Source of the DNA: Piromyces finnis finn
Taxonomy: Eukaryota; Fungi; Neocallimastigomycota
Length of the DNA: 64,000 nucleotides
NCBI GenBank assembly: GCA_002104945.1
Contig: MCFH01000050.1
Span: forward strand, 1-64,000
Direction: 5' to 3'
In this document: positions 55,197 through 64,000 of the stretch, in pieces
Layout: each line of letters starts with the position of its first letter
Numbering within the stretch: the stretch's first letter is position 1
Translations under genes and position numbers: made by a program
Notes under the pieces: generated by a model
What the model was told of the DNA's origin: nothing
Seen by the model: the letters and a program-made list of their open reading frames with translations, nothing else
The model's database searches: none

Positions 55197-56014
55197 TAAT
55201 AATTATATATAGAAATCTAATAAGAAAAAGAAAAAAGTCAATAATAATAAATTAAAAGAAAAAAAAAAAACTTTATCAGAAATTGTAAGAAGTTAAACAG
55301 AAGTATATTATTAATAAAATTTAAAATCATTACCATAATAACTTTGGGATAATAATTTATTGTATTTTTTTAATCTTATAATATGTTATATTTTTTTGTA
55401 GAATTATTTTACTTTAAATTTTATTCAAAAAATTAAAAAGAATACTAATATTAATATTTATTTATTTATTTATTAATAAACAGAAATATCGTAAAAGTAA
55501 ATTTATATCTCAAATCATTATTTATTATTTATAACAGATTTTATACAAATTATCAATCTAAATAATCAAAAAATAAATTTATATTTACAAATCAAATAAT
55601 ATTATATTCAAAATAAAATAAAAAGAAACAAGAACAAAAACAAAAACAAAAAACAATATTAATTTAACAATAATTAAAATAATTAATTTATGTGATTCTG
55701 ACAATTTTCTATTGAATACTTACTATTTTATTCAATCAACAAGTTATAAATAATCATACCATATTTCATAGATATATAATTATTTGATTGTCTGAAGTTT
55801 TTTTTGTTAACCATTATATTAAAACAAAATTTTGAAGAATTTTGAAATGTAAATATATGGTCTATTATTTTTATAATAACCAAACTATATTCGAAATAAA
55901 TAAAAATCAAATTTAAAAGAAATAATTTTATTTCTTTAAAACAAGTAGCAGTATAATATTTAATTATAAAATTAGATTCATAAGACCTTTAATATTTAGT
56001 ATATTTATTTAAAA

Positions 56015-59000
56015 ATGTTTTCATATGCTGTCACCTGTTTAATTTGGGGTGATAATCCAAATAATGTATTTTCAGTACTATTTTCAAAGAAAACTAGTAT
56101 ATCCGATATAAAGTTAAAAATATTGAAGATTTTGAATTTAAATAAAGATTTATTCGATAATATAAAATATTATAAAGTTAATGAGGAACTATATGTTGAT
56201 GACAAAAGATTTAACATAATAAAAGATAAAGAATCTTATAATTTAATATCACCCTCACAATTTTTTGAAATATCTGAAGTTAGTGATAAAAATTTAATAA
56301 TTGATTGTATAGAAACAGAGAGGTCTTTTAACTCAGAGGATTCAATAGGTGCTATTATTGTAATAGATGAAAATGCATTAAAATCAAGTAATGTGAAACA
56401 ATTCTATTCCCCTGTAGAAACAATTTCAATGAAAAATAAGTATTTAACAAAACAGGAATCTAAAGATATATTTAGTGAATTAAGAAATAAATTCAATGAA
56501 GATGATGAAAGTTATAATGGAGATTTTGAAGATGATTTTAGTGAATATGATAATGATCAAGCATATAAAAAATATAATGCAAAAAGTAGGAAAGAAAAGA
56601 CAAAAAAGAAGATTACAAAAGAAAATAAAGATATTATTAAAACAAAAATGAGAAATTCCGAAAAAATAAAGTGTAATTCACTAAAAAATGAAAGTTTTAT
56701 TGAAAATAAAGACACTCAATTTAACATAAACCAAAAAAGTTTAACCCCAAACGATATATCAACATCAACAGAAGATAAAATTAGTATAAATAATGAAAAA
56801 AATAAACTAGAAGCAATAACAACTATACAACAAATTATACCACAATCCACACAATTTTCACAAATTCAGGTTAATAATTTATTTAAAAACAAATCCAATA
56901 CTATCTCTAATAATTATATAAATTACAATATAAATAAAGTTTCATCTAACTTCTATTATAATATCGATACGAGTGAAGAAAAGTATAAAATATCAAGCAA
57001 TAAATTATCAAAAAAATCAACACAAGATATTACAGCTGTTGCTGCATCTAACAAGCAAGTGATAAAGTTAATTAATAACAATGAATTATTTAAAGAAACG
57101 ACAATTGAGGATAATTTTCATATATTAAATACAAAAGATATAAAGGTCCAAGGCACAGGTAATAAAAATCAAAACCGAAATTCAATAAATACTAATATTT
57201 ATGATCCACAAGTAACATCGTCAGTTTCAAATTTTAATATAAAACAAAATAACGATACCCCATCTAAACCAATTCTTAATACAGATTCACTACCTGTTGA
57301 AGAAACTATTCTTTCTGAAAATGAAAGTCAATTTATTCATCAAACTATGAATACATTAAATTATCCCATTACATCTATGAATAAATATAATAATGGCAAT
57401 AATAATAGATGTAATAATTTTGATCAATCATCTAATAAAAAGAATGAAAATGAAAATCAATATAATAATAATAACAAAATTTTCTCACGTCCTTATAGTA
57501 GAGTATATTATCCAAATAATGATATAGAAATAATGGAATTTTCCCAAGGTAATATTATACTAAATAAATTTAAAACTTAGATAATATAATAATAGTAATA
57601 TTGTTATTTATTTTTTTAGGTCTTGAGCCTTCAGCACCGTTGGAAAGTCAGATTAGTAACGATATAACAAATGTTAAAAACAATAATAACTCAAACTCTG
57701 ATTTATTATCAGTAACATCAACAGAACATAGTAATGATAAAGCTATAATAACATCATCAGTATCACCTAAAACAAGACCACCATCAATATCAAAATCTAT
57801 AATATTTGGTGTAGAGCAGTTTCCAACACCACCAGAAAATAATAATGAATTGGATATTACAGTTGTAAATCAGACACAGCAACCTCAATCACAAGCATTG
57901 CGTACTAATAATAATAAGCATAATAGTGCTGTAATTCATCAATATTATAAAAATGATTTAAATGATCAACCACCATCTTATGAAAACATCAATAATCATC
58001 AACCATCTGCACCAAATTTAACAGATTTTTCAAGTAATAACACAATGACAGCTCTAATTGATAGTAACAATCATAATGTAGAAATGGATGTATCAAATAG
58101 TTCAATTGAGATACCAAATACAAGTATTACCTCTTCTGAATCAAATATAAAGCATTTTAGTTGTTTTCCATGTAATACTTTGGATTCCTATCTTTCTAAA
58201 AAACTTCATATATCAATTAAAAGGATAAGAATATTGTAAAAATCATTTTAATAAATTGATTTAAATATTTTCGTTATTAATATAATATCAAAATAACTAA
58301 TATAAAAAGTACTTACTAATTTATTAACTAATATATTATTAATTTAGAAAAATATTATTTATTTTATTGTTGTTATTGCTTTCAATCAGTATTGTTTTGC
58401 TTCTCATATTTTTATCTCAGCCCCATAGTAGCAGTAGACAATTGGATTATTCAATTTATACCATAACTAGAACATCAACAATAATAAGTGGAACGAATAC
58501 TATAACAAAAACATTAATTCATAGACCAGTAACAATATCAGAACAAGATTTTTCTGCAGAACCAACATCAAGATCTATTACCAGTAATACAAATGAAGAA
58601 GGTGATTTAATTATAGAATCCGATGGAAAAGGTAGCGATGAAGGTTCAATTAAATGGACAATTAAAGAATTAATTAACCCATATTTAGTTGTAAGTTATT
58701 TTAAGAAAGGAAGTGATATACGTAATGACGATTTGGCATCAGAATCATTTAAATTTGGTATAAATCGAATTGTAGAAATAAATGATACAATTAATGTAAA
58801 TGATAGTGAGAGCTATTTTGAATTAAAAGCAACAAAAGGAGATTTAAATTTTGAATTTTTCACAATAAATGACATTAAAACAAATATTGATATATTTAAG
58901 TTTTCAGAATATTTTGGAGTTGATTCAAATAAATTAAATGTCACTTTAAACTATTTATTTACAACTCAGAGTATAAGCACTAGCGATCCAGATTATGCTA

Positions 59001-59575
59001 TTTTAAATCCTCAAGCTGCACGATGCTTTTTAGAAATTGAAAATTGGAATTATAAATATGATAATTCAAAATTAGTTATACAAAGTAATATTATATCAGC
59101 AGATTTGATTTGGTCAGTAAAAGAAGAAAATGTCATTAATTTAAACAACTCAGAAGGAAAAATTATATTAATTGATGGCGTTAAAACCGCAAGGATTGAT
59201 AATACAAGGAATGCTACCTTATCTCTTTATGAAGATATAGTAGAATTTGAAGAGGATGAAGGTGCAGTAAATGTTGATTTTCTTGTATCAGATGTTCAAA
59301 AATCAAAATATTTACTGGTAGATTTTGAAGTATTATTAAGATCATATATATTAGATATAATGACCGAAGAGTATGCTCAAAGTGTTAATTCAGTTACATC
59401 ATCAACTTCCCCACAATATATGAATTATCAATATTCCTTAAAAAAGATAATTTTTAACTTACCTTTATTCAACAATAGATTTTATTCAATTCAAACACTA
59501 TTTGATTCTAGCCATTTGAAAATACTATCAATATTTATAAGTTTCTTAATACAATTAATCATTATTAGTATTTAA
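56015..59575 (+). CDS. Membrane protein: Crinkler-like Ubl N-terminus, disordered region with PSAP/PPxY, TM helix, lumenal beta-rich domain, hydrophobic C-terminus (~1130 aa, 3 exons)
   Basis: In-phase junctions ..TCC CAA G|GT CTT GAG (exon 2 from ~57620) and ..ATA TT|A AAA ATA (intron 58236-58347). ORF 58367-59575 has no early ATG of its own, so it needs the upstream exons. Confidence 0.75.
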
Positions 59576-59888
59576 CAATTTTTAAGATTTAGTTAATAAT
59601 AGTAATAAAAATAATTACGAGTAAGAAAATCAAAAAAGTAATAAAAAAGGATACATTAAATATTAATATAATATTTAAAATCTTTATTAATAAATAAATG
59701 AATAAAATATAATATAAAAATAAAAAGATAAAGAGACGTTTTTAAGTAATTATTTAAATACTTTTATATTTTAATATTTATATATAAAATACAAATGGAA
59801 AGTTATAGTTATTAATTGACTCTAGAATTTTAAGTATTTCTATCTTTGAAATATTTTAGAAAATTAAAAAATATCAATTATGTAACAA

Positions 59889-59935
<47 letters not shown>

Positions 59936-60216: not shown

Positions 60217-62518
60217 TTATGTATTTATTTTTTTTTTCGTTTTCTGAAGATATTCTATTAGGGATGTATCAGGTTTACAATTTTGAGGATTTGTTGGAAA
60301 GTTATCTATTTCATCTAATTTAGTATTACTTGAAAGATGATTTAATGATGATATTCCAAATTGTCTTTTACAATATAATCTTGACGATGAGAATAAAGAA
60401 GAAGGATCCTTTTTTTTTAATTTTTTATAAAATAGAATGTTTTAAAATTTTAATATAAGAAAAGTTAATGTAAATATAAAAGATTTATATTTTATATAAT
60501 ATAAAATTTAAATTATATTACATCGTTTAGCTTGGTTTCATTTTCATAATATTTATTACTTATTAATCCATTACAATTTTTGTTTCCTTTAGTATATCCA
60601 TCATCAAACATATAATCACAAATAAATGGTTTTTTTAATTGTTCCTCAACCTTTTTACTTTCTTTATTATCTCTGTATCTATTCATCATCATTATAATAA
60701 TACAAATTTAAAATAAGGTTATTATATATATATGAAAACTAAATTTATTAAATTTTGAGTAAAACAGTTACTTATCCATTGTTTCACTAATATAATCGTC
60801 TGGATCATTTTTAATTGGAATATATGGTAATCCACTGTATAATTTATTATCATCTGAACTACTTTTATCAACATTAATTTTTAGTTTATCATAAACATTT
60901 GTAGGTTTAAATGTATAATCAGATTGAGTAACTCTAAATATGTTTTATAATGATTATAATATTTATATTAATATAAAATTATCAACATTCTCATTCTTTA
61001 TATATATATATATATTACGTTTTAAATTGTTCAAATGATTTTTTATTATTGAGAGTTGGAAAATTTATATTTTTTTTCTTTTTCTATTATGTTAATGAAA
61101 ATTTTACATATTAATATATTATGTATTATTATTATTATTATTATTATTACTATTTTTTTGTAAAATTTATATTTATAAATATCAATATTTATATACATTA
61201 TCCTCTTCAAATTTTGGTGCAAAATCCATATATCTTTTTATAATACCGGTTCTTGTATATCCATCTTTTTTAAAATTATAAATATAATAATAATAGTATA
61301 TAATATAATATATATATTAATTTTTTTTTCTTTTTTTTTTCTTTTAATTTGTAATTACCATCTTCTATATAAGTAGGGAAAATATTTCGATTATAAAACT
61401 AATATTTAATATTTATTATATTTATTATATAATACATAAAATATAAAAGTAATATTAGTATAATTCATAATAATTTATTAATATAATTATATATATATAT
61501 TTACCCAATCTATTTTTTTATCTATAATTTATATAAAATAAAAAATAAAATATATTACAATAGTTATTTTTTTTTCTTTATATTAATATAATTAACAATA
61601 TAATGAAATAATGAATTATAATTTATATTATCATTAACCTTTATCCATATCGTTATAATCATCATTAACATAGTCCGCTAAATCATTGTATGTATGAAGT
61701 TTGCATGCATTTTTACCATATCCTGAATTCATTTCTATTATATTATCTTTTTGTTGAATATCTCTATTGTTTATTTTTTCGGTATAATCTTTTTTTGTTA
61801 CAGAAATATTATCCTAAATATTCAAAAAATAAAAAATTAAAAAATTATTATATATATTATTTAATAATATTTTATTAATAATGACAAATATATTTTATAT
61901 AAAATAAGTATTTTTTATTGTTTTATAAATAGTAGTTACATCTTTTGTATGAAGACTTGGATCAAATAATTTATTTATTCCTCTAGTATATCCATCATCA
62001 ACAATCGTGTAAATATTATTTCCTTTATCTTTATATTTTGGGGTTTTAAATTTTTCATTGTAGGTAGTTAACCAGTGATAGTCATCTCTTTTTATATTTA
62101 TATTAATCATCATATGAAAATAATGAATAAGAATCAATTATACTATTTTTCTTTAATTAAAATATGATGCAATTTTTACATTATTTAATTAAAAAAATAT
62201 TCACCTAAAGTCATCATTTTCATCGATAGATTTATCATAAACAACAAATGGGTTTTTATTATTAGAAAATCCTGTTTTACTTTCTTCTTTTGGTGCAAAT
62301 TTTAATAAACTACGAATATATGATTGATTATTTTCATCATTATTATTTGATTTCTTACAATGAATACAATCATCTCCGTTATAATATTTTCGGCATGGAC
62401 ATTTTGGTTTCTCTCTTTCATAAATTCGATTATAATTGTTATGAGTTGTTGAATTTTGACTTATATAAAAATGTAATGGCACTTTATCAGGTCCACTTGA
62501 ATATTCAATATCAGTCAT
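60217..62518 (-). CDS. SAXO4/PPP1R32 (IIIG9)-like axonemal microtubule inner protein
   Basis: N-terminal SSGPDKVPLHFYISQNSTTH..KTGFSNNKNPFVVYDKSIDE resembles PPP1R32 (SSGG..PLKFY....T.Y..TGY.SN..P.V....SL). Repeated DGYTRG/SGYGKN/DGYTKG motifs and SVTKKDY/VTQSDY. About 6-7 exons; some boundaries are approximate. Confidence 0.65.
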
Positions 62519-63265: not shown

Positions 63266-64000
63266 ATGTCAGACGAAAATGAAATTAATAACAATGCTGG
63301 TGACAGTACTATTGCTGAATATGCTACTTATGAAGATTATTTGGATAGCCAAATTACACCTTTGGATATGTATTATTTAGAAGTAAATAAATATTATTTA
63401 ATTTTTTATATTTCTATAAAAAATATATATAAAGATTTTCTTAAAATTATTATAGGATAAGGAACTAGCTAGACAACTTGTTGAACTTGGTTATAGAGGT
63501 ACTGGAGAACCTTTAAAACGTGAGGAATTTACAAGCAAAAAAAAGGCAGCTGAAATGTTTAGGCTTTCTAAACATAATGCTACTAAGGTTTTATGTAGTC
63601 AAGATAAAGATTTAACTGGTTATCCATTTTTAAAAGCATTAGCAGAAAGAGAAGAATCTAATCGTAATGGAAAGTTAATGGTATATTTAATTTATATTTG
63701 GAAAATATAGTGCTAAGAAAATTAAATATTTAAATAATTAGTTTTAGTATATTTTAAAAATAGTAAAAAACTTAATTAATATATTCAATAATATAGTCTA
63801 TTATATTTATAAGAACACATAATAGTAAAGGACAAGAAATAAGTGGTTATATTGATTATGCTCATCGTCTGAAGATTGAATCATTTGAACAATATTTTTC
63901 TAGAAAAAAGACGTTATTACCAAGACCTTCTGATATGTCATTTTATAACTGGGAAACTCAAACATGTACTTGTAATGCAACTCCAAACTTCCAAGTTATT
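63266..64000 (+). CDS. CFAP299: Cilia- and flagella-associated protein 299 (C4orf22 family), runs off the right edge
   Basis: F/[21 protein letters not shown]|[38 protein letters not shown]|[45 protein letters not shown]. Confidence 0.96.

Follow-up and report, generated by a model that had tools for sequence, protein, structure and literature searches.

Residues 1–118 of an 1125-residue protein of Piromyces finnis are a divergent Crinkler-N (PF20147) β-grasp header, a known domain placed in a new architecture: the header is followed by a linker of ~600 residues, one transmembrane helix, an ecto domain of ~325 residues and a hydrophobic C-terminal tail. The gene occupies positions 56015–59575 of the window, which is the whole stretch of 64,000 nucleotides analyzed (contig MCFH01000050.1); the gene and all features described below lie on its forward (+) strand.

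The gene consists of three exons, all of which were found together on single spliced RNA contigs from two studies. As defined by the open reading frames (ORFs), the splice joints, the RNA contigs and the public protein sequence, the coding part of exon 1 (56015–57548) specifies residues 1–511 and the first base of codon 512, exon 2 (57620–58235) the region of residues 512–717 within the disordered cytosolic linker, and exon 3 (58348–59575) the C-terminal portion including the stop codon. The exons are separated by GT..AG introns of 71 nt (57549–57619; joint 57546/57618, cut +2, in three RNA runs) and 112 nt (58236–58347; joint 58235/58348, in four RNA runs). The spliced RNA contigs thus show that both introns assumed in the original prediction, which had been made from the DNA sequence alone, are real, and that exon 1 is not transcribed apart from the exon encoding the transmembrane helix, as it had also supposed. 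M1 is the earliest ATG in the frame of the ORF at 56015, and a stop lies five codons upstream. The RNA contigs of both studies cover position 55900 onward, giving a 5′ UTR of 55900–56014 as a minimum extent, with the contig continuing ~100 nt upstream; the 3′ UTR extends from 59576 to the RNA contig end at 59651. The joined exon model is identical in sequence to the 1125-residue public protein BCR36DRAFT_360511 (P0047). Public databases list this entry as ‘uncharacterized’.

The header (residues 1–118; 56015–56368) was identified by Pfam and profile searches, alignment, AF2 modeling and structure matches. Its residues 7–74 matched PF20147 with an E-value of 7e-4 and a score of 20.7 bits, under the curated gathering cut-off of 24.6 bits; the expected resemblance to the Pfam Crinkler-N model was borne out by the match itself but not at the curated threshold. 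Six of eight family members matched the model at E ≤ 1. All 12 canonical Crinkler-N domains used for comparison also matched it (best E-value, 1.4e-28). When a profile built from orthologues only was compared with these 12 domains by hhalign, the probability was 96.4% and the E-value 1.1e-9, over the first 54 columns. The header also proved to be 31% identical (E 2e-7) to that of a paralogue in the same genome, P0012, which itself clears the Pfam cut-off (31.1 bits), as do the tail-anchored P0016 (29.1 bits) and P0029 (29.7 bits). A mixed header profile retrieved canonical tandem headers among 1.84 billion proteins, with E-values down to 3e-11. Like canonical Crinkler-N domains, with which it aligns end to end, the header stands at the very start of the protein with no signal peptide, has the β-grasp fold (see below) and carries the signature xxCLxxGDxxxxxFxVxx...IxxLKxxI...KV...IIV. 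The closing motif, in contrast, was only partly as had been envisaged: the last strand is kept (residues 113–117) and reads IGAIIVID, whereas both histidines and the trailing proline of the canonical HxHV(I/V)V-P end (HLHVIVKAP) are missing from it in the alignment with canonical headers.

AF2 predicted a β-grasp fold for the header, in agreement with the original prediction. The model, for which the folding alignment included canonical headers, had a pLDDT of 81.1 and a pTM of 0.77, with the order β-β-α-β...β-β, and its best 50 PDB structure matches were all β-grasp domains. Ras-association (RA) domains and ubiquitin-like domains (Ubls) are mixed among the leading PDB matches, the topmost being the RA domain of RGL1 (TM by target 0.77). 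In the ESM Atlas, the three closest shapes were Crinkler-N clusters, one of the domain by itself, one in which it is joined to a kinase and one in which it is joined to an HNH nuclease (TM 0.69–0.73), which ranked ahead of RA domains and USP7 Ubls. Together with the hhalign and paralogue matches, this ranking upholds the Crinkler-type nature of the N-terminal Ubl.

From its sequence, the protein is predicted to have two hydrophobic segments and to hold the header on the cytosolic side. KD hydropathy placed the transmembrane helix at residues 719–739 (58352–58414), and its flanking charges indicate an N-in orientation: in four orthologues, three to six K/R residues are present on the N-terminal side versus zero or one on the C-terminal side, as the positive-inside pattern has it. 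N-glycosylation sequons are conserved at four of five positions in the ecto portion versus one of ten in the cytosolic portion. The orphan ecto, or lumenal, domain (residues ~742–1065; 58421–59392) is predicted to be mostly β and is 62–65% identical among orthologues. The conserved C-terminal tail (residues ~1105–1125; 59510–59572), hydrophobic by hydropathy, is a candidate second membrane segment or GPI-type signal; small residues next to it vary among the orthologues. The header is thus joined to an integral membrane protein, as had been proposed, whereas the length of ~1130 residues beyond the header was not borne out: 1125 residues make up the whole protein, header included. The protein is not polytopic; hydropathy gives one transmembrane helix plus one C-terminal hydrophobic tail.

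Beyond the header, no significant Pfam match was obtained with exons 1–3 or with full-length orthologues, and no domain of a toxin or enzyme type (REase, kinase, NTPase, HNH or peptidase) was found, consistent with the earlier view that what comes after the header is not a nuclease or kinase effector domain. The ecto domain had no match to PDB sequences at E ≤ 10, its best feature-based score in the ESM Atlas (0.84) was under the usable level, and no relatives of it were found in prokaryote species genomes. Its AF2 model, computed from eight sequences, was unusable (pLDDT 35).

The cytosolic linker between the header and the transmembrane helix is disordered, of low complexity and rich in N, S and P, with islands of conservation that include two PSAP motifs, PPSYENI, FPxPP and YYPxxDIE. 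Among five orthologues, 47 of the 235 columns of exon 2 (20%) are invariant, and the only invariant runs of at least four residues are PSAP, SISK, PPSYENI and QPSAP, a pattern that indicates selective constraint on the PSAP and PPSY motifs. The first PSAP (residues 515–518; 57628–57639) is a candidate ESCRT-I UEV-binding motif; the second (residues 640–643; 58003–58014) lies in the QPSAP island. PPSY (residues 629–632; 57970–57981), within PPSYENI, is a candidate Rsp5/Nedd4 WW-binding PY motif. All three are N-terminal to the N-in helix and would therefore face the cytosol. Upstream of them, YPNNDI (residues 499–504; 57509–57526), within the conserved block YYPxxDIE[IV]ME[FL], is a candidate YPx(n)L/I motif of the Bro1/ALIX type (YPx3I). 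FPTPP (residues 579–583; 57820–57834) is found inside a conserved SISKSIIFGVEQFPTPP block that is common to the paralogue group, and an acidic island, YNGDFEDD (residues 167–174; 56513–56536), is identical in at least six of seven orthologues. A weak Pfam WBP-1 match across the PPSY region was not significant (E 0.83). The P. finnis genome encodes UEV and WW domains; the UEV domain is interrupted by introns in the genome, with 74 of 121 profile positions in one open frame. Conservation of short motifs in such an N/S/P-rich linker can have other causes, phosphorylation for example.

Orthologues of the 1125-residue protein are present in the anaerobic gut fungi Piromyces, Neocallimastix and Orpinomyces; the gene is single-copy, and the orthologues are 60–68% conserved across genera. 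The idea that the same architecture recurs in other fungi holds in full for Neocallimastix and Orpinomyces, and a protein of the chytrid Nowakowskiella has the header followed by PPPY. A search of the P. finnis genome with the header profile detected three copies, one of them in the 1125-residue protein; a search of the genome with PF03106, for a header fused to a WRKY/GCM1 domain, gave no match. The second copy belongs to a paralogue whose layout is the same and whose homology is distant. This paralogue group retains the header, two to three copies of FPxPP and, in every member, a PPxY ahead of the transmembrane segment, and its C-terminus has a Ser-rich stretch, then a spacer, then a hydrophobic tail. 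The ecto domains of the two groups proved to be distantly homologous in a profile comparison (hhalign 80%, E 1.4e-5); BLASTP between them gave no significant match. The third copy is in a tail-anchored protein of ~250 residues, which has no ecto domain and no PY or PSAP motif. All three proteins are predicted to be membrane-tethered, with the header in the cytosol.

We tentatively favor, at a probability somewhat short of even, the explanation that the header acts in the cytosol as an interaction or sorting module of a protein trafficked by ESCRT and Rsp5, and not as a device for effector delivery. The cytosolic tail would recruit ESCRT-I (PSAP to the Vps23 UEV), Rsp5 (whose WW domains would bind PPSY) and possibly Bro1 (through YPx3I). 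The Ubl at the N-terminus could then serve as a built-in, non-removable ubiquitin-like signal read by ubiquitin receptors, with the outcome that the protein would be constitutively sorted into multivesicular-body or budding vesicles, or would nucleate that machinery, and would display its ecto domain on the vesicle surface. Such a trafficking or ubiquitin-mimic role, which the original prediction had raised, fits with the header being cytosolic, with PSAP, PPSY and YPx3I being conserved after it and with the other two headers being membrane-tethered. The role of the header cannot, however, rest on the PY and PSAP motifs, because the tail-anchored paralogue has neither.

Cytosolic PPxY motifs beside a transmembrane segment are typical of the Rsp5/Nedd4 PY adaptors Bsd2, Ear1, Ssh4, Sna3, Ndfip1/2 and WBP1, which are small and have neither a Ubl nor a PSAP. 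In the endosomal trafficking regulator LITAF/SIMPLE, PSAP and PPSY, its predicted TSG101 and NEDD4 sites, adjoin the membrane anchor (PMC3656027). Closely spaced P(S/T)AP and PPxY on the cytosolic face are common to LITAF/SIMPLE, ARRDC1 and retroviral and filoviral late-domain proteins, and are present here as candidate motifs; those proteins, unlike the 1125-residue protein, have no Ubl or ecto domain, and their sequences are not homologous to it.

An alternative that we consider unlikely, though credible, is receptor-like signaling, in which the ecto domain would sense a cue, the header would dock a kinase or small GTPase, much as the related SSK1/Mcs4 Ubl docks MAPKKKs or RA domains bind Ras, and the PY and PSAP motifs would act only in ligand-dependent down-regulation. 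Receptors typically have such a bitopic layout and a conserved ecto domain, kinases often come after canonical headers, and the RGL1 RA domain is the best PDB match; this RA match is, however, equaled by many Ubl matches, the protein has no kinase, GEF or other signaling domain in Pfam, and the tail-anchored paralogue, having no ecto domain, has nothing to sense with. Zhang et al. 2016, as summarized in PMC5289972, found Ubls of this type in housekeeping proteins too, namely SSK1/Mcs4; the Crinkler Ubl is reported there to be significantly related to the N-terminal domain of SSK1/Mcs4, which contacts a MAPKKK heteromer. By description in that source, the SSK1/Mcs4 Ubl is, like the header may be, a cytosolic protein-docking module of a non-effector, with the difference that SSK1/Mcs4 is a soluble two-component response regulator whereas the header is on a membrane protein.

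Less probable still is that the protein is an ER-membrane quality-control factor, whose tethered cytosolic Ubl would recruit the proteasome or ERAD machinery. The ERAD proteins Herp/HERPUD1, Usa1 and TMUB1 do have a membrane-tethered, N-terminal cytosolic Ubl, and a Ubl of that placement with a membrane anchor is found in all three paralogue groups here, including the minimal tail-anchored form. However, their Ubl family and membrane topology are different and they have no late-domain motifs. The header Ubl is of the Crinkler type, related to the Herp/TMUB1 Ubls in fold only and not in sequence; PSAP and PPxY are indicative of the endosomal machinery and not of that of the ER; and such factors are without a large, apparently glycosylated ecto domain.

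We regard as very improbable the reading of the protein as a genuine Crinkler/CR effector, whose header would carry the C-terminal region, a new toxin or a domain that acts on a host, out of the cell. Variable C-terminal toxin domains normally follow Crinkler headers, as stated in the account of PMC5289972 and seen in the ESM-Atlas clusters, and the C-terminal domain here has no known function. In place of the nuclease, kinase or NTPase toxin domain of Crinkler effectors, however, a linker, a transmembrane helix and an ecto domain come after the header; the helix, with its positive-inside flanks, parts the header from the C-terminal domain, and a hydrophobic tail ends the protein. Whereas Crinkler genes form an expanded, recombining family, this gene is single-copy and conserved across genera, and the canonical HxHVxV-P junction motif has been lost. 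Furthermore, P. finnis is a commensal, the original prediction having correctly taken its source to be a non-pathogenic gut fungus. That a generic Ubl resembles Crinkler-N by chance has the least to recommend it, since the subthreshold Pfam score and the restriction of the hhalign match to 54 columns are set against the E-values of 1.1e-9 in that match and 2e-7 to a paralogue above the cut-off, the end-to-end alignment with canonical headers and the Crinkler clusters as nearest ESM-Atlas shapes.

Because the same Ubl type is found in housekeeping SSK1/Mcs4 proteins, as far as the account in PMC5289972 goes, the direction of evolution implied by the term ‘domesticated’ header is not established. 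A broader conjecture, which we consider distinctly doubtful, is that the Crinkler-type header is fundamentally a ubiquitin-like signal by which proteins are directed to ESCRT-dependent vesicle budding. The membrane-tethered proteins of gut fungi, with header, PSAP, PPxY and YPxnI, would then exhibit the ancestral pathway, and the signal-peptide-less Crinkler effectors of oomycetes, chytrids and mycorrhizal fungi would exploit it to exit in extracellular vesicles.

In the account of PMC5289972, the export and delivery of Crinkler/CR effectors without a signal peptide are unresolved, the header being assumed responsible and its cellular partner not known. The P. finnis proteins offer a natural experiment in this regard: in a non-pathogen, three separate gene families have a Crinkler-type header that is free of any toxin and predicted to lie on the cytosolic face of membranes, and two of these families have conserved candidate motifs of the ESCRT/Rsp5 type next to it. 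The position of the header beside these conserved sorting motifs suggests a testable cellular role for it, and a conserved, Neocallimastigomycota-specific family that has been without annotation in public databases now gains one.

The open reading frame starts at 56015 (+), in a window of about 18% G+C (contig C179 of the 56.46-Mb, 232-contig genome of the anaerobic gut fungus Piromyces finnis). It crosses GT..AG introns at 57549-57619 (+) and 58236-58347 (+) before reaching a stop codon at 59573-59575 (+). The splicing across both introns assumed in the original prediction was borne out by four public runs, drawn from three studies, whose Logan contigs contained exactly these two joints (57546/57618 and 58235/58348). 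In each of two runs, from different studies, one unbroken contig spanned all three exons, from 55900 to 57546, 57618 to 58235 and 58348 to 59651. Exon 1 is therefore not transcribed apart from the exon encoding the transmembrane (TM) helix, since single contigs cross all three exons. The library type of the runs is not on record, and their RNA-derived content was read from the fact that the contigs are spliced. A contig of run X4 begins within intron 1 at 57598 (window 57598-57619) and is then spliced across exons 2-3; this lone contig may stem from precursor RNA not yet spliced or from a start within the gene. The spliced translation, 1125 aa, was identical letter for letter to BCR36DRAFT_360511, a public model labelled "uncharacterized protein", for which no Pfam domain is recorded; the exons were searched one by one and joined solely for this comparison.

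Downstream of the gene, about 250 nt from its 3′ end, two long homopolymer tracts meet, one of about 28 T and then one of about 14 A (59895-59935). Two short ORFs at 63266-63710 (+) matched Pfam DUF4464 at profile positions 2-29 and 64-105, with 24.7 and 28.6 bits against a cut-off of 27 bits, and are probably exons of one gene. We take DUF4464 to be the cilia/flagella-associated CFAP299 family, an identity that, if true, would suit a zoosporic fungus. On the minus strand, ORFs at 60513-60692 and 61895-62137 had a common DDGYT[KR]G motif, and a Cys-rich ORF at 62201-62518 gave a weak, sub-threshold match to EGF_laminin (E 0.006); all three may belong, as exons, to a single gene with repeats.

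Residues 1-125 matched the Pfam Crinkler effector N-terminal domain (PF20147; E 7e-4), as anticipated, but at 20.7 bits the match stayed under the cut-off of 24.6 bits. A paralogue encoded on contig C146 of the same genome, whose N-terminus shares 31% identity with the header (E 2e-7), clears this cut-off with 36.7 bits as a six-frame match and 31.1 bits as a protein. By hhalign, a profile built from the window's orthologues only aligned with 12 canonical fungal Crinkler-N domains, all 12 of which match PF20147 (best E 1.4e-28), with a probability of 96.4% (E 1.1e-9), covering the first three strands and the helix between the second and third. AlphaFold2, run on a 28-sequence alignment that included canonical headers, towards which the model may be drawn, gave a model with pLDDT 81.1 and pTM 0.77 (b1 4-10, b2 19-23, a1 29-39, b3 50-55, b4 86-88, b5 113-117). 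The beta-grasp fold foreseen for the header was recovered: the best 50 Foldseek matches in the PDB were all beta-grasp domains, including RA domains, TBCE, USP4/15, ubiquilin, ubiquitin, SUMO and NEDD8. The three ESM-Atlas clusters nearest in shape were Crinkler-N families, one in which the domain stands by itself, one pairing it with a kinase and one pairing it with an HNH nuclease (TM by query 0.69-0.73, rmsd 2.5-2.8), ranking above RA and USP7 Ubls. The 28-sequence alignment was colinear throughout. Its final strand, predicted to end in an H(I/V)(I/L)V-type motif, is present, but reads IGAIIVID against the canonical HLHVIVKAP, the terminal His-x-His and Pro being missing. The paralogue, the profile comparison and the ESM-Atlas clusters uphold the proposed Crinkler-type ubiquitin-like N-terminus, and the header belongs to the Crinkler-N superfamily as a divergent member.

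Neither a hydrophobic segment nor a signal peptide was found in exon 1, and hydrophobic stretches occur at just two places in the protein, aa 719-739 and about aa 1105-1125. Around the TM helix (aa 719-739), the four full-length orthologues carry 3-6 Lys/Arg on the N-side versus 0-1 on the C-side, a charge bias that puts the first 717 residues on the cytosolic side of a predicted N-in bitopic protein. Of the N-x-S/T sequons, 4/5 past the TM helix were kept in all four orthologues versus 1/10 in the cytosolic part, consistent with a glycosylated lumenal or extracellular domain. The header (60-68% identity to the orthologues) and the ecto domain (62-65%) are better conserved than the linkers (31-48%), which marks them, as judged from conservation, as the two folded, constrained modules. 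The ecto domain had no relative by Pfam, PDB sequence, ESM-Atlas features or a prokaryote-genome search, and AlphaFold2 gave no usable model of it (pLDDT 35). The hydrophobic tail at the C-terminus may serve either as a second span of the membrane or as a GPI-type signal. Pfam searches of the exons and full-length orthologues found no nuclease, kinase or other toxin family anywhere in the protein, in agreement with the predicted membrane protein lacking an effector domain. Taken as a whole, the protein does not class as a Crinkler/CR effector, since tests for the toxin domain that defines the class and for the junction motif found neither.

Classical "late-domain" ligands are P(S/T)AP, bound by the ESCRT-I UEV domain, PPxY, bound by Nedd4/Rsp5 WW domains, and YPx(n)L/I, bound by ALIX/Bro1. 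We aligned exon 2 of five orthologues (the window, Piromyces sp. E2 and three metagenome loci that share the three-exon layout). Of 235 columns, 47 were invariant, and the invariant runs of at least four residues were PSAP, SISK, PPSYENI and QPSAP, SISK running on into IFGVxQFPxPP. Exon 1 contains an acidic island, YNGDFEDD, and ends in a conserved block, YYPxxDIE[IV]ME[FL], that includes YPx3I. YPx3I and FPxPP are the least secure of these candidate assignments. UEV and WW domains are encoded in the P. finnis genome. The endosomal trafficking regulator LITAF/SIMPLE similarly has PSAP and PPSY next to its membrane anchor, as predicted TSG101 and NEDD4 sites (PMC3656027); in the window protein PSAP and PPSY lie in the cytosolic linker, N-terminal to the TM helix.

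Run with HMMER against the whole protein library, the header profile had only 29 hits at E<=1e-3. One group comprises the window's orthologues, from Piromyces sp. E2, Neocallimastix lanati, Orpinomyces and rumen metagenomes. Proteins of a second group, of about 800 aa and including the C146 paralogue (G000:C146:628507-631014, minus strand; L005:3507-6014), have the layout of the window protein: header, two to three FPxPP, PPxY, TM helix, ecto domain and hydrophobic tail. Their ecto domain is a distant homologue of the window's by hhalign (80%, E 1.4e-5), with nothing significant by BLASTP. The C146 gene appears as a single 835-aa open frame only because no stop codon interrupts its short intron; the spliced public model has 802 aa. 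The third group consists of tail-anchored proteins of about 250 aa in which a C-terminal TM helix comes after the header; the P. finnis member is encoded at G000:C171:248234-248590 (minus strand; L006:4705-5654). Exon 1 of this gene (217 aa, the sole part in the ORF list) encodes the header and a short linker, and exon 2, past a GTAAGT...AG intron, encodes K-N-K-K-V-R and then the TM helix. Since this paralogue has neither PY nor PSAP motifs, header binding, whatever the partner, is independent of them. Outside the gut fungi, a protein of the chytrid Nowakowskiella sp. JEL0078 (KAJ1568608.1), possibly incomplete on its 2.6-kb contig, combines a Crinkler-N header above the PF20147 cut-off (29.7 bits) with a downstream PPPY. 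The remaining hits were canonical Crinkler-N domains, many in tandem, as in Galerina. The 28-sequence profile detected exactly three headers in the P. finnis genome, a number to be read as a lower bound: one per group, all membrane-tethered on the cytosolic side and none joined to a toxin.

We regard header homology and fold, transcript structure, the bitopic N-in architecture, motif conservation and the paralogous family as established, and infer that the header is a cytosolic interaction module. Our preferred mechanism, held tentatively and a little short of even confidence, is ESCRT/Rsp5-dependent sorting or vesicle budding, in which the linker motifs would draw in Vps23 and Rsp5, perhaps also Bro1, and the header would provide a built-in ubiquitin-like signal. 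The main alternative, which we consider less likely, is a receptor-like protein whose header docks a kinase or GTPase; the best PDB match of the header model is an RA domain, and the related Ubl of SSK1/Mcs4 is reported to contact MAPKKKs (PMC5289972). A membrane Ubl of the ERAD type, a true effector carrying a new toxin domain and a chance resemblance of the header to Crinkler-N are minor possibilities.

Non-effector use of this Ubl type has already been reported for SSK1/Mcs4 (PMC5289972), and one paralogue, that on C146, is automatically annotated in UniRef as a Crinkler N-terminal domain-containing protein. Our literature search found no paper tying Crinkler domains to Neocallimastigomycota proteins. 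What appears to be new, as read from the sequences, is an architecture, conserved in gut fungi, in which a header, a late-domain-type linker, a TM helix and an ecto domain follow one another, together with the apparent membrane tethering of every detectable P. finnis header. The family provides a practical way into the question of what Crinkler headers bind in the cell.
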